Below are positions 12,497-18,766 of a DNA stretch of 64,000 bases, piece by piece (position 1 is the first letter of the stretch; every line of letters begins with the position of its first letter). The translations under genes and the position numbers were made by a program. Below the pieces are notes generated by a model. It was not told the origin of the DNA. It searched no databases and worked only from the letters and a program-made list of their open reading frames with translations. Location of the stretch: NCBI GenBank assembly GCA_907165135.1, contig OU015567.1, positions 10,974,001-11,038,000 on the forward strand. The letters are read 5' to 3'. The stretch comes from Oikopleura dioica. Its lineage: Eukaryota; Animalia; Chordata.

Positions 12497-13931
12497 ACTA
12501 GCTCAGATTCTATAGATCTTGGATGGCTCGAATCATAGGCTCGAATGATAACCCCTCTCTTCGCCTGCTCTCTTTGTTGATCGAGCTACCAATAAATGAA
12601 AACAAAAATATCCAATTGTTTGTTTTTGCAAGGCACATGTCAGTTGTAAGGTTTAGTCCCGTGAAGACGTGTGTTTGTAATGCGATCTCGGATAGATTTT
12701 ATGTTTGGCTGATTTATAAACTTCGATAAACTTGGTTCAAAGTCTCGACGAATTCAACTTGACTTTTACTTCTTGAGGTTATGTTTGTATGCTTTCGATA
12801 AAAATAAACGCCTTTTAATTCAAATTGATTCTGGTGAAGTATATTTTGACAAGGTTTTAATCAAAGCAAATCGTCTGAATATAGAAAATGAATTTCGTTA
12901 TTTTATTTTATCTTCTGCTTTGAAGCGTGTCTGGCTCTGAAGACGACCGGAATTTAACATCAAAAATGAGCTTAAAACAAACGTCGGTTAATTTACATTT
13001 GTTTGATCCAAAAATACTGCGAGAATTTTCAACTACCCACTGTTTCTCCTTTAGCAGATGTTTTCGCATTGAGCAAAGCCACAGCTTACATTCATCTCTT
13101 CAAAAGCGAAACGGCAGTTCAATAGAATACTCTGCTTTTATCGTCAATATGAAGGTTGTCAAACAATCAACTCAACAGGAAATCGTGCAGCTTTGGAAAC
13201 AAGCTATCATCAAATAAAATTAAGTATTTGGGCCATCTTTGAAAACATATAATTTGAAAGCGCGAGGAAGAACCGTTAGTTATTAGCGGGAGAAACAGGT
13301 GCTTGGAAATATCGGACGCATGAGCGAGTACTTTATCACATGCATGTCCAAACAAGCAGTAAGAGAGTGACACTTTAGAACGTGTAAGGAAATTTTTCAA
13401 AGGCGCACTCAACGGCCCGCTGACAGGGCGAAGAGACAGAAGAATTTGAAGAAGCGAGACAAGACGCCCCTTGTTAGAGGAGCAATTATCGCTTTCGATA
13501 ATTACATGGATCAAGAATCCCCATCTTGCGACTATTTGTAATTATTTTATGCTACAGAAATTATCCACGCATCTTTCGTTATTAAACAACATCATTAAGA
13601 CTCTTGCACCTGTGTTTTGATTAGATGCATATTTTATCCGACAGATCGATTTCGGTACGAGGTAGCACTCGTACAAGTTTCTCGAATAATAAGTTGGTAA
13701 CGACCGTAGTAAATTAGTTAACAACTTGTATCAAATCGACAACTAATGATTTACAAATTTGTCCATGATGTTTTATTGAAGAAAACTTCCATAGGGGCAA
13801 GTCAAATGAGTTCAATTGAGCGCCCCGAGCACTTGGAAGGACTCTTCACGACGAATGGTGGTTTCTCCGAGAAGTGCGAAGCTAGAAATCTTTTCATGCA
13901 TACTTTCTTATCTTTAGGTTTCCAGTCTTAC

Positions 13932-16466
13932 CTCGTTTGACTTCCCCGGCGCTTGATCGCCAGCTCCGCTTCGATATATGAATCAGTTCTTGTTTTGTCA
14001 TCTCTTGATAATACCCCGACGATTACTTAAAAATGAGTTGGTTCAACGTCGAGGAAGTCTTTTTCAAGTATTTATTCTGTCAAAATACCTGTAGAAATGC
14101 CAACAAAGAGATTGACCACGAAGGCTCCAACAAACACCGAAGCACTGGCTAATGGAGCCCTTGTGGAGACATTGAGGAACATCAGCATCGGTGTCATGCT
14201 GAGGGAGGTTTCAAATTTTGCGGACGGAAAATTTTTTTCTCAGATTTTTGTTTCATCTGAAAAAGCGTGAAAAATGACGCAGATTGATGGTCGAATGATC
14301 GCTCCAGCAAAGATATTTTGGGAGAAAAGTAATTTTGAATGTTCAAAAATGGGTCAACTGGTCACCGTCACTGTGACTCATAGAAAATAGGTACTTTTAT
14401 TTTCTCTTCGGATTCTTCTTTTTCAGAGCGAGATCTAGTGGGAGGCCTAAAATGAGCGAGGTTTGATAAGGGATTTGATGAGATAACATCATCTGAAAGA
14501 AGTGATGAAAAAGCTCTGAAAATGGGCCGAAAATAGGAACGAGCAGCGACAAAACGACCTCGAAATCAGGCGCTTAAAATAAGGCTCATCCCATTTCCGA
14601 AACTGAAAATTTCGGAAAGGAAAGGGCAGCGACTAAACGGGGTCGAAATACGGCACCTCAGAATAAGTTTGGCCCATTTCTCATCATAAACATGATCCTG
14701 AATCATATGATCCATGTCGCCTATCCAACAAATGAAAAAATTGGTCACTCCTTGGAGTTATCAAGTGTTAGACCCACCATTCGACTCGTCTCAACGAGCT
14801 TAACAAAACTGCGCTATCGGCTTTCACCCTTTTTCAAAAAATCCTTGCGGACCTTTTTATTCTTGCCAATATCAGATTGCAAATTGACTAATTTCATATG
14901 AGACCTCCCGCGTCGACGTAAATCTCCATCAAGTTCTTGCCAACTGCCGAGCTCAGACTTTCATTCCATCAAGTGATCTTCTCCGCAGACGTCCAGAAAA
15001 CACTCCTTCGCTCTCGAAATAGTCGGAAGAGACGATCTAGATCCTTGATAATTAAATTTAAGGGGCTTTAAGCGGGCTTACAGCGGGTAATCGCTCCCCT
15101 TAAAATTTTTTGAAACCATAATAAAGGAAAAACTTGTATAATCTATATTTTTATACCAAATGGGTGAGGGTGGGGTTGGGGACATAACTGAGATTGATGA
15201 ACTCAGAATCCCTCGCCTATGTCAAGCCCCTTAAATTTAATAATCAAGGAACGGGGCTGAAACAAGCCCCGTAAATTTAATTATCAAGGATCTAGATCGT
15301 CTCTTCCGACTATTTCGAGAGCGAAGGAGTGTTTTCTGGACGTCTGCGGAGAAGATCACTTGATGGAATGAAAGTCTGAGCTCGGCAGTTGGCAAGAACT
15401 TGATGGAGATTTACGTCGACGCGGGAGGTCTCATATGAAATTAGTCAATTTGCAATCTGATATTGGCAAGAATAAAAAGGTCCGCAAGGATTTTTTGAAA
15501 AAGGGTGAAAGCCGATAGCGCAGTTTTGTTAAGCTCGTTGAGACGAGTCGAATGGTGGGTCTAACACTTGATAACTCCAAGGAGTGACCAATTTTTTCAT
15601 TTGTTGGATAGGCGACATGGATCATATGATTCAGGATCATGTTTATGATGAGAAATGGGCCAAACTTATTCTGAGGTGCCGTATTTCGACCCCGTTTAGT
15701 CGCTGCCCTTTCCTTTCCGAAATTTTCAGTTTCGGAAATGGGATGAGCCTTATTTTAAGCGCCTGATTTCGAGGTCGTTTTGTCGCTGCTCGTTCCTATT
15801 TTCGGCCCATTTTCAGAGCTTTTTCATCACTTCTTTCAGATGATGTTATCTCATCAAATCCCTTATCAAACCTCGCTCATTTTAGGCCTCCCCACTAGAT
15901 CTCGCTCTGAAAAAGAAGAATCCGAAGAGAAAATAAAAGTACCTATTTTCTATGAGTCACAGTGACGGTGACCAGTTGACCCATTTTTGAACATTCAAAA
16001 TTACTTTTCTCCCAAAATATCTTTGCTGGAGCGATCATTCGACCATCAATCTGCGTCATTTTTCACGCTTTTTCAGATGAAACAAAAATCTGAGAAAAAA
16101 TTTTTCCGTCCGCAAAATTTGAAACCTCCCTGAGATAAGTGGCTGACACTCCCGATAAAAGGCCACAAGATATGATGTGCACCATGTTTAAGGAAGTAAA
16201 TCGCTTCCAACGACAAATCAAAAGACCAATGAGACCTGTCAACAGCGATAAGGCTTGAATTTTTAAGAGAAGGTTTATCTTCGTCTTTTACCTGCATACA
16301 GTGAAAGTAACACGATAAATAAGATGGAAACAATAGACTTGACTTCATTGTCTTCAAAAATGTACCCAACTGTAGATCTCCTTCCTTCGGATAGAGAAAT
16401 CACCTCTTGCATAATACTTTTTCTGTCTATGAGCATCACAATGCCCGTGCTAATCAACGAGTTCAC
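13932..16466 (-). CDS. Multi-pass membrane protein (partial), possibly a degenerate Ion_trans-type S5-pore-S6 region; one exon interrupted by a foldback element
   Basis: Exons 16466-16292, 16253-16131 plus 14199-14089, and 14025-13932, with GT-AG introns of 38 and 63 nt, read VKSIVSILFIVLLSLYAALSLLTGLIG...SATYL|SMTPMLM...SVFVGAFVVNLFVGISTVIVGVL. The gene probably extends both ways (candidate exons 13170-13900 and 16500-18300). The channel assignment rests on motif resemblance only. Confidence 0.6.
14203..16130. mobile_element. 1928-bp foldback element with ~858-bp near-identical arms; 3-bp TSD TGA (PIF/Harbinger-like ends)
   Basis: Arms 14203-15060 and 15272-16130 are reverse complements; termini GGGAGG...CCTCCC; TGA at 14200-14202 and 16131-16133; no transposase ORF. 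Confidence 0.92.
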
Positions 16467-18766
16467 AAATTTGATTGCTTTCTAAGTAAGATTTAACAGC
16501 ATCAATTTTGGAACTGGAGCTTAGTCCATCCACACAGAAAATAAAGCTCATTACAGACAACGTACTTTTGAATGGATTTTCTTCGCCCTTCAAATCTCTC
16601 TCACTTCTTGAAAAAAGCGACATTTTCAGAAAGATTTTCTCGATTGTTTATAAAAAGTTGAAGATGGCAAAGTGGCTTGGCGAGGGAGAGGGTTATCGAA
16701 ATTAATTACCGACGAGGGAGTTAATTTAACACACTTCTCGTGTACTCGGAAGACTTTCTGGGTCAAACAAGACATCAAAATTCTGACGGACATCTGTATT
16801 TGCCGCTGAAATCTTCAGCCTGAAGAAACTGTCAAAAATAACAAGCAAAAGTTGTAATCGCAGATCAGAATCTTTAATATCGCGAAATGCATCAATTTTC
16901 TCGAGTTCCTCAGAAGGACCATAATACGAAAACAAATTTTGTGATATGGGATTTTTGAATGTACATGCTGGGCCAGCTCTGGTCTCTCTTCAAAACGTAT
17001 AATTCTTTCGCCTTTTACTAAAGAATTCCGTGGAGAGGGACACTCTTATGAGTATTTGATTTTTCTGAAGCCCTACACGGGGCAATCTATCCAAACCTCC
17101 CATAAACTTCACAAGTTTCATTGATACGTGTTGAAAATGCGTCAACTGAAAACTGCAGATTTCAAACAGTAACTGATAACAAATGTTATAGTGTTATTTC
17201 AGTTTATCACAGCTTTACTTTATTTTTAATAATTCGAATCATAACCAAATGTTTACGAAACAGTCTTTTTCAGCAAAATGATTTTGCCAAAATCTTAGAA
17301 TGAATCTACCATGGAGTTGAGCTCTAAGTGGAGATAGGGGAATCTGAGGTTCGCGAGAATACATGGTCTTTGCGCGAACCCGAATTCTGAGCGCGCCTAA
17401 TTTTGCGACAGCTGTGTCTAGCCAATCAGCGGACATTTTTATATGCAAATTAGGTCAATCCTGCTTTCAATCGAAGAGTTGTGTTTACTTAAATCACATC
17501 TCCATCATATAAGGCCTTGTTATTGCACCTTTGAGTTCCATTTTTGAGATACTAGTAGGTTTGATTAAGTGTCACAACAATGTTAGCACTTTTCCTCGTT
17601 GTCCTGCTTCAGTTTGTCGGGCCACTGCGAGTCTATTTATAGAGATAACCAAAAGTAACGGAAGAATTATTCGAAGAAAGTTCAATGCAAATTACAAGCT
17701 AGTAATTTGAAAAGGTGACAAGGTCCCTTTTAGAATTCTTTTCTTTTTTGAAAAATTAGTTGTTGCATGTCCGGAAGAGAAAAACGTGCCCACTGCGACC
17801 ATGATCCTTTTTGCGAAACCATCTTTCGGCCACAAGGGATGGCCATGAGCACCAGCGGTGCCCCCAGCTGGCGGTATTTGTATTCTGCCTTGTCTATAAA
17901 TTCATTCTGGTAAAATTCTGAGATTTCTGAGGAAAAAGCAATGGCTTTCTTTTCTTTTCGGTTTTACATCCCTTTGATGGATAAATCAATAACACCTTGT
18001 TTGCATTCTGGCCTGCTTCGGTAAGCCATGTTCCAACGAAAATGGAAATCCTCAGCTTCCTCCCGGCTCAGCACCAAAGCCGACAGAGCTTTCTCAAACC
18101 CAGCGCCGGCTTAGCCGCACAAATGAGCCAAATCCAACAGCAAAGTTTCCGAGAAAGCAGCGGAATAGGAAAACTTCTGTCTAGCTAGTAAGCCTTTTCG
18201 ATTTTACGCAGCATTAGGCCGTATAAATTTCGTTGAGCGTTTCAGTCACGTTTTTAAGAATCACCGAAATTCGACAAATTCCAACGTGTCTTTAGTATTC
18301 TCTCGCGGAGAAAGCGCCATGTCAAGAGAAAATTATCTTATCTTTATTGTGCCCAGTCAGTGTTTAACCTGTCTACTGGGACGATAAGAGATCCATTAAT
18401 CAGCATGTCTCCCGCCGAGATTTGTCACTTTTGACGGTTCATTAGTGGCTGCTCGATGAACACGTACCAACCATATGTTTATGAGACGCGGAAGGCTTAC
18501 GAAACTCGCGTGAAAAAATTTGGAATCCCAAAAGCCGATCCGATTTGATTCCATTAGTCGCTTGCTGACGCGTTTTTACTGACGTTTTACTGTAAATAGA
18601 TGACGTAAATCTTTTAATTTCACTTTTTCTGTTTATTCATTAATAAAAGTAACACAGTTTTAATGAAATGAAAAAAGATCAAAACTGCAAATCGTACAAA
18701 ATATAAAAAGTTAGTGCTCAAGAACTAGGAGTGTATATAAGTTAGATTAGTTAGCATTAGCAGCAT

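Follow-up and report, generated by a model that had tools for sequence, protein, structure and literature searches.

When a transposon comes to lie within a coding exon, is the allele disabled, or can the insertion be removed from the transcript as though it were an intron? The question is raised by a 64,000-nt stretch of the Oikopleura dioica genome (assembly GCA_907165135.1, contig OU015567.1, positions 10,974,001 to 11,038,000 of the forward strand; hereafter the window), in which a 1928-bp DNA transposon with two long inverted arms interrupts a coding exon of a putative membrane-protein gene. A first-pass annotation of the window had proposed that splicing could remove the insertion exactly, as a GG-AG intron. 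We find that the insertion is real, segregating and not fixed. A low-copy, non-autonomous transposon has probably jumped only recently into the best-conserved coding exon of the host gene and formed a disruptive allele. All coordinates given without a scaffold are positions within the window, and the gene lies on the minus strand.

Structure of the element and its target site

The element occupies 14203..16130 (termini GGGAGGTTTCAAATTTTGCGGACGG) and is defined by its inverted repeat and by a 25-nt terminus common to two other complete copies. It is a non-autonomous DNA transposon with long terminal inverted repeats (TIRs), composed of a palindrome arm of 866 nt (14203..15068), a loop of 195 nt (15069..15263) and a second arm of 867 nt (15264..16130). 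A repeat finder placed the inverted arms at 14199-15068 and 15264-16134, 195 nt apart, with 629 nt at 100% and 244 nt at 99% identity. Aligned with each other, the arms differ within the element at three places, by single mismatches at 14232 and 15061 and by a 1-nt indel at 14439. A further difference, at 14201, falls on the central base of the duplicated target, where a mismatch is expected because the target duplication is a direct and not an inverted repeat. The longest open reading frame within the element is 69 aa, mirrored in both arms, and the element is thus non-coding. A search of 13500-17000 against Rfam found no RNA family, and Tandem Repeats Finder (TRF) detected no sub-repeat structure in the arms, only a single array of 11 nt x 2.9.

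The element is bordered by the two copies of a target-site duplication (TSD), at 14200..14202 and 16131..16133, reading TGA on the plus strand and TCA on the gene strand. The minus strand accordingly reads ...GCCACTTATC-TCA-[GGGAGGTTTC ... GAAACCTCCC]-TCA-GCATGACACC..., which bears out the layout TATC-TCA-[GGGAGG...CCTCCC]-TCA-GCATG of the first-pass annotation and, with the inverted repeat and the 3-bp duplication, its recognition of a transposon of foldback shape that lies in a coding exon and is flanked by duplicated TCA. The long stem it described is present as well, with arms of about 866 nt in place of the proposed ~858. The interval 14199-16129 that it had assigned to the element does hold the element plus one TSD, but the element proper is the 1928 bp at 14203-16130.

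The sequence shared by both sides of the insertion is CTCAG, a 5-nt overlap made up of the 3-bp TSD and one chance match in the flank on each side. Three base pairs is the sole length that fits all three complete copies of the family (TGA here; TTA and TTA on C2). A 5-bp TSD (CTGAG) was considered and ruled out, as it fails for both C2 copies (CTTAG vs CTTAC). In all three copies, a C precedes the T-N-A target duplication.

The insertion is real and segregating

Sequencing runs contain both the occupied and the empty site. In DNA run X1, contigs covering 13910-14218 and 16102-16700 cross both junctions between flank and element and stop at the start of the arm repeat; contigs built from k-mers cannot span the arms. 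In run X2, from another study, a 379-nt contig with a depth of 61 joins 14198 directly to 16130, skipping 1931 nt, and 5 letters at the joint fit on both sides. This contig retains the whole 38-nt intron upstream of the split exon (16254-16291) and 15 nt of the 63-nt intron downstream, and is therefore genomic and not derived from cDNA. Some 10 positions set it apart from the window, corresponding to a haplotype ~2.7% diverged, which fits the published heterozygosity of 3.6% for this assembly (PMC8008620). Arm sequence identical to that of the window is also present in X2, at ~2x the depth of the flank, and this sample may be heterozygous for the insertion.

The exact empty allele in X2 implies that the insertion segregates and is young. 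The first-pass annotation had likewise taken the insertion to be very recent, judging from the near-identity of the arms; the empty allele and the uninterrupted exons of diverged orthologues described below agree with this.

The host gene and its interrupted exon

The reading frames suggest a five-exon model for the host gene (13812..16623, minus strand), predicting a protein of ~218 aa with four hydrophobic helices. The gene extends from an ATG at 16623 to a stop codon at 13814-13812, and its introns have GT-AG boundaries: intron 1 (16554-16482), the 38-nt intron 2 immediately upstream of the split exon (16291-16254), the 63-nt intron 3 downstream of it (14088-14026) and intron 4 (13931-13882). 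As it stands, the split exon (16253..14089) measures 2165 nt; subtraction of 1931 nt leaves 234 nt, or 78 codons, in phase 1-1, as the first-pass annotation had calculated for an exon between these 38- and 63-nt introns. Each half translates cleanly. The 5´ part (16130..16253) encodes ..LSLLTGLIGLLICRWKRFTSLNMVHIISCGLLSGVSATYL, ending in ...GVSATYL, and aligns to 585-654 of the orthologue on contig L019, and the 3´ part (14089..14198) encodes MTPMLMFLNVSTRAPLASASVFVGAFVVNLFVGIST, starting with MTPMLMF....

A search of protein representatives with exon 2 returned two mispredicted fragments from other lineages, on contig L019, and a third orthologue fragment was found on contigs L024 and L025 (P0001, P0002 and P0003 being the orthologue fragments). 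The search for a published or predicted full-length protein of the host gene yielded only such mispredicted fragments from other lineages. All three of these diverged contigs have the orthologous exon in one piece. Compared with L019, the 3´ half of the split exon has 17 identical codons, 18 with synonymous changes and one replacement, and the 5´ half has 13 synonymous and eight replacement changes. It follows from this comparison that the host gene is real and constrained, and that the element lies within its best-conserved stretch; to judge from these codons, the exon is under strong purifying selection. Two further differences between the lineages were observed. L019 contains, at 366-419, an additional intron that separates ...GRRST from VGYIFED... 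and is missing from the window gene (~16372), an intron presence/absence difference between lineages, and its orthologue of the split exon has two more codons (RFGFASF vs RFTSL).

The affiliation of the protein was sought by several routes. Three exon pieces and the orthologous uninterrupted exon gave nothing above chance in Pfam; RELT (E=0.046) and TMEM128 (E=1.1) were rejected as host gene families because of their chance-level scores, and a lead from the ESM Atlas was rejected at a best score of 0.77. The genome contains no paralogue of the gene. The host gene thus appears to be single-copy and lineage-restricted, with a predicted four-helix membrane protein of no known family as its product.

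Family members and repeat modules

Nine occurrences of the 25-nt terminus GGGAGRTTTCAAATYTTGCGGACGG were counted in the genome; they account for both ends of three complete elements and for three solo ends. The two complete copies besides that in the window measure 251 bp (C2:9606784-9607034) and 2085 bp (C2:1156794-1158878). Both are flanked by TTA/TTA and, unlike the window element, sit inside pre-existing introns. The 2085-bp copy, on another scaffold than the window, also has long near-perfect arms, which identifies the hairpin architecture as a trait of the family. Its insertion point is the TAA of the donor CAAG|GTAAGG in a gene for a coiled-coil protein. The GGG end of the element recreates GTAAGG, and a 57-nt intron has thereby become a 2.1-kb intron with a long hairpin. 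This copy would constitute a natural test of the tolerance of introns to hairpins. The second intronic copy lies 24 nt before an TTTCATCAG acceptor. A 199-aa open frame through the insertion site on C2 might have indicated a second exonic copy, but this was ruled out, as the frame stays open only by way of a 57-nt in-frame, stop-free intron. A hairpin element at the NALCN locus was excluded from the family on account of different termini (TCTAGAAGGGG..).

By its target duplication only, the element would be classed as PIF/Harbinger-like. A six-frame search of the genome for the transposase domain DDE_Tnp_4 (PF13359) gave no match, and in a search for an autonomous partner no large open reading frame or coding sequence was found beside the C4 solo end. 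Two identical solo termini, at C4:6451343 and C4:6477858, lie in the same orientation 26.5 kb apart, suggestive of a segmental duplication that took in a truncated copy.

In its internal make-up the element is mosaic. Other foldback pairs match the central part of each arm (query 304-759) at 79%. Foldback-like pairs related to this part are found at C5:11751994-11754071 and C1:8415562-8420783, with termini not common to the window element. A 76-nt piece of the arm (14743-14818, 15514-15589) has matches of 82-89% at a minimum of 17 loci. Elsewhere this piece is found as an inverted pair ~475 bp apart (e.g. C5:6201756-6202305 and C1:9262873-9263429), which marks it as the terminus of a separate ~550-bp family resembling miniature inverted-repeat transposable elements (MITEs). 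The arms of these foldback elements seem to have been assembled from shared modules.

The loop, in turn, holds a copy (15113-15263) of a very abundant dispersed repeat with ~300 candidate loci at 78-87%, and in DNA run X1 the k-mer depth at 15215-15315 reaches ~190,000. Elsewhere, the 3´ part of this repeat is arrayed in tandem with a period of 56 bp, for example at C4:8499600-8501800, C5:7038830-7040142, C5:7788475-7791338 and C4:10735949-10737989. Many contigs carry variable short inserts (GGCCCGAAGGGCC-like) between 15221 and 15263.

Splice-site geometry and RNA

The hypothetical GG-AG intron (14199..16129, minus strand, 1931 nt), delineated from sequence only, would consist of the element plus one TSD. 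Its boundaries, CAG|GG at 16130/16129 and CTCAG| at 14199/14198, are of the type G plus non-T...AG and restore the reading frame. The direct repeat CTCAG allows six equivalent cuts, each of which restores the empty site; only one of them gives an intron ending in AG, and this candidate starts with GG. Exact excision would create the junction ...TATCTCAG|CATGACA.... The would-be acceptor AG combines the A of the TSD with a G of the flank. The exact fit is weak evidence, since it requires only a G after the TSD, like the first base of the TIR, a coincidence expected in about one case in four. A canonical GT is present at 16125-16124, four bases inside the element. Its use would leave 4 extra nt; the first-pass annotation had noted that it would cause a frameshift.

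Four full-scoring genes for U1 snRNA (C2:4941612, C2:10211337, C5:9925004 and C5:10664610) have the canonical 5´ end AUACUUACCUG, and the three copies that were retrieved all start with ATACTTACCTG. Two low-scoring U1-like copies lie side by side at C4:6603540 and C4:6604182 and might be variants or pseudogenes.

RNA was represented by raw reads of two oligo-dT (poly-A) runs with the same species label, X22 and X23, with 1.5-1.8 billion letters covered in each. The host gene is nearly silent in both. Its last exon drew three reads, which diverge at the 3´ end and carry four differences, and the sole joint of 14198 to 16130 is that of the DNA contig with its neighbouring intron retained. In each run, ~40 reads match the arms over only 30 nt (14543-14573, 15759-15789), with unrelated sequence on both sides, which points to transcription of a related repeat elsewhere in the genome.

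Alternative readings of the transcript

The interpretation that we favor, as the probable one, is that of a young, disruptive allele. Direct observation covers the element with its ends and target duplication, the constrained host gene and an allele that lacks the insertion; the consequence for the mRNA is inferred, and most likely the insertion allele is a loss-of-function or strongly weakened one. If the transcript is read through unspliced, the protein would end in ...ATYL followed by 19 foreign residues and a stop, and would lose the conserved C-terminal 90 residues. Such an allele could persist because it is recent and because an intact allele also segregates. The intronic location of the other two complete copies is the outcome expected from selection against exonic copies. 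That the palindrome or its second arm was instead produced by Nanopore fold-back reads or by polishing, which the first-pass annotation had named as a possible refutation, is very improbable and largely excluded. The assembly is Nanopore-based (PMC8008620), run X1 possibly derives from the assembled animal itself and its contigs stop short of spanning the arms, but a precise TIR and a 3-bp TSD are found at both ends, X1 covers both junctions, pieces of the arm/loop boundary are present in X2, a second full-length member on another scaffold has the same long arms, and mechanical duplication would not yield the three differences between the arms. Removal of the element by cryptic sites, such as the inner GT together with the AG at 14200-14199, would give a frameshifted or internally altered mRNA and in effect another null. 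In other organisms, the removal of exonic transposons is often imprecise, and a canonical GT lies ready 4 nt inside the element. Still, this GT stands in a context (GAG|GTTTCA) that pairs with U1 at only 4/9 positions, the split exon is not covered by either RNA run, and we consider such processing rather improbable.

The disruptive reading has its most serious competitor in the proposal of a nascent intron, which the major spliceosome would remove exactly, with one TSD, as a GG-AG intron, leaving the allele functional. U1 would bind CAG|GGAGGT co-transcriptionally, and zipping of the arms would bring the acceptor CCTCCCTCAG beside the donor. Several observations favor such an intron over a disruptive allele. 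The donor pairs with the genome's U1 at 8/9 positions, compared with 7/9 for the host gene's own donors and with the 4/9 of the competing GT register, and the candidate acceptor is good and pyrimidine-rich. The geometry is exact and unique among the six equivalent cuts, and a 2.1-kb member of the family is placed right behind a donor within an intron of an apparently intact gene on C2. Non-GT-AG introns make up 11% of the introns in the Okinawan assembly OKI2018_I69 (PMC8008620), GA-AG introns are frequent in this lineage (PMC7072748), Table 1 of PMC3443670 reports introns arising by transposon insertion in Oikopleura, and exact excision assisted by the TSD is the known mechanism of introners (PMC11282704; Huff 2016, cited there). 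The RNA runs speak for neither side, with no reads on the split exon and three on the last exon. Against a nascent intron stand this lack of spliced reads, the ease with which the exact fit arises by chance, the failure of the insertion to reach fixation, and a length of 1931 nt that is ~40x the median of 49 bp in OKI2018_I69 (PMC8008620). A search with partial coverage of the literature also found no documentation of GG-AG introns as a class or of their frequency in O. dioica. The donor and acceptor tracts are, moreover, mutually complementary and form the base of the 866-bp duplex, and the location of both proposed splice sites inside this stem supports the disruptive reading. A perfect double-stranded RNA of 866 bp would be expected to draw RNA-interference or editing enzymes. 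On balance, we regard a nascent intron as doubtful. That the allele is functional by way of exact GG-AG removal of the 1.9-kb hairpin, and would represent an animal intron caught at birth and still polymorphic, one of many young alleles of this genome with a transposon in an exon, we likewise consider doubtful.

Comparison with known systems

The introner elements of Micromonas, Aureococcus and others (Huff et al. 2016, Gozashti et al. 2022, reviewed in PMC11282704) are TIR DNA transposons with a 3-bp TSD, as is the element described here. On paper, the parallel extends to the splice sites, one of which would come from the end of the element and the other from the TSD and flank, resulting in exact excision. 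Unlike introners, which number hundreds to thousands of copies, the present family has three complete copies and is therefore not an intron-generating swarm, and its other copies are not themselves introns. In addition, the donor would be GG and not GT, and the candidate spans 1.9 kb with a giant hairpin. Gozashti 2022 does not mention Oikopleura.

Closer in phylogenetic terms are the non-canonical introns of larvaceans. Those of O. dioica (PMC8008620, PMC7072748) belong to the same animal group and demonstrate a spliceosome that tolerates non-GT donors, and the inverted-repeat ends of the window element could pair. The documented non-GT-AG introns of O. dioica are, however, short and mostly GA-AG or GC-AG, unlike the present candidate. 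An intron of the Fritillaria type would be transposon-derived, with pairing ends, and shown by RNA to be processed by the major spliceosome. The window element has pairing ends; the MITE-derived non-canonical introns of Fritillaria borealis (Henriet et al. 2019, as summarised in PMC11282704 and PMC13326754) have AG-AC or AG-AT boundaries, as opposed to GG-AG here.

As for transposon families, the 3-bp T-N-A duplication (TTA, TTA, TGA), the inverted termini and the non-coding nature of the element are reminiscent of PIF/Harbinger-Tourist elements. It departs from these in having TGA in place of TWA at one of the three target sites, arms of 866 nt in place of tens of nt, and no DDE_Tnp_4 transposase in the genome. 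The Foldback (FB) elements of Drosophila are similar in that two long inverted arms make up almost the whole element, but the arms described here are without tandem sub-repeats and the TSD is 3 bp and not 9 bp, such that "foldback" denotes shape only. Transposons spliced from the mRNA of interrupted exons are known from Tc1 in Caenorhabditis elegans and from Ds and dSpm in maize, where the phenotype depends on the amount removed. Splicing in these cases is mostly imprecise and makes use of cryptic GT-AG sites, whereas at the present locus an exact, non-canonical option exists.

Implications

On present evidence, the locus is a young insertion polymorphism of an ordinary kind, in a genome that is highly heterozygous and very dense in genes. 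Its value lies in being well characterised, with a known empty allele, linked single-nucleotide polymorphisms at 16241, 16220, 16162, 14168 and 14108, and a constrained host gene. If exact splicing were shown, the locus would provide a dated and still-segregating gain of a transposon-born intron in a chordate relative, where the two alleles could be compared directly, and would show tolerance both of a non-GT donor and of a giant hairpin.

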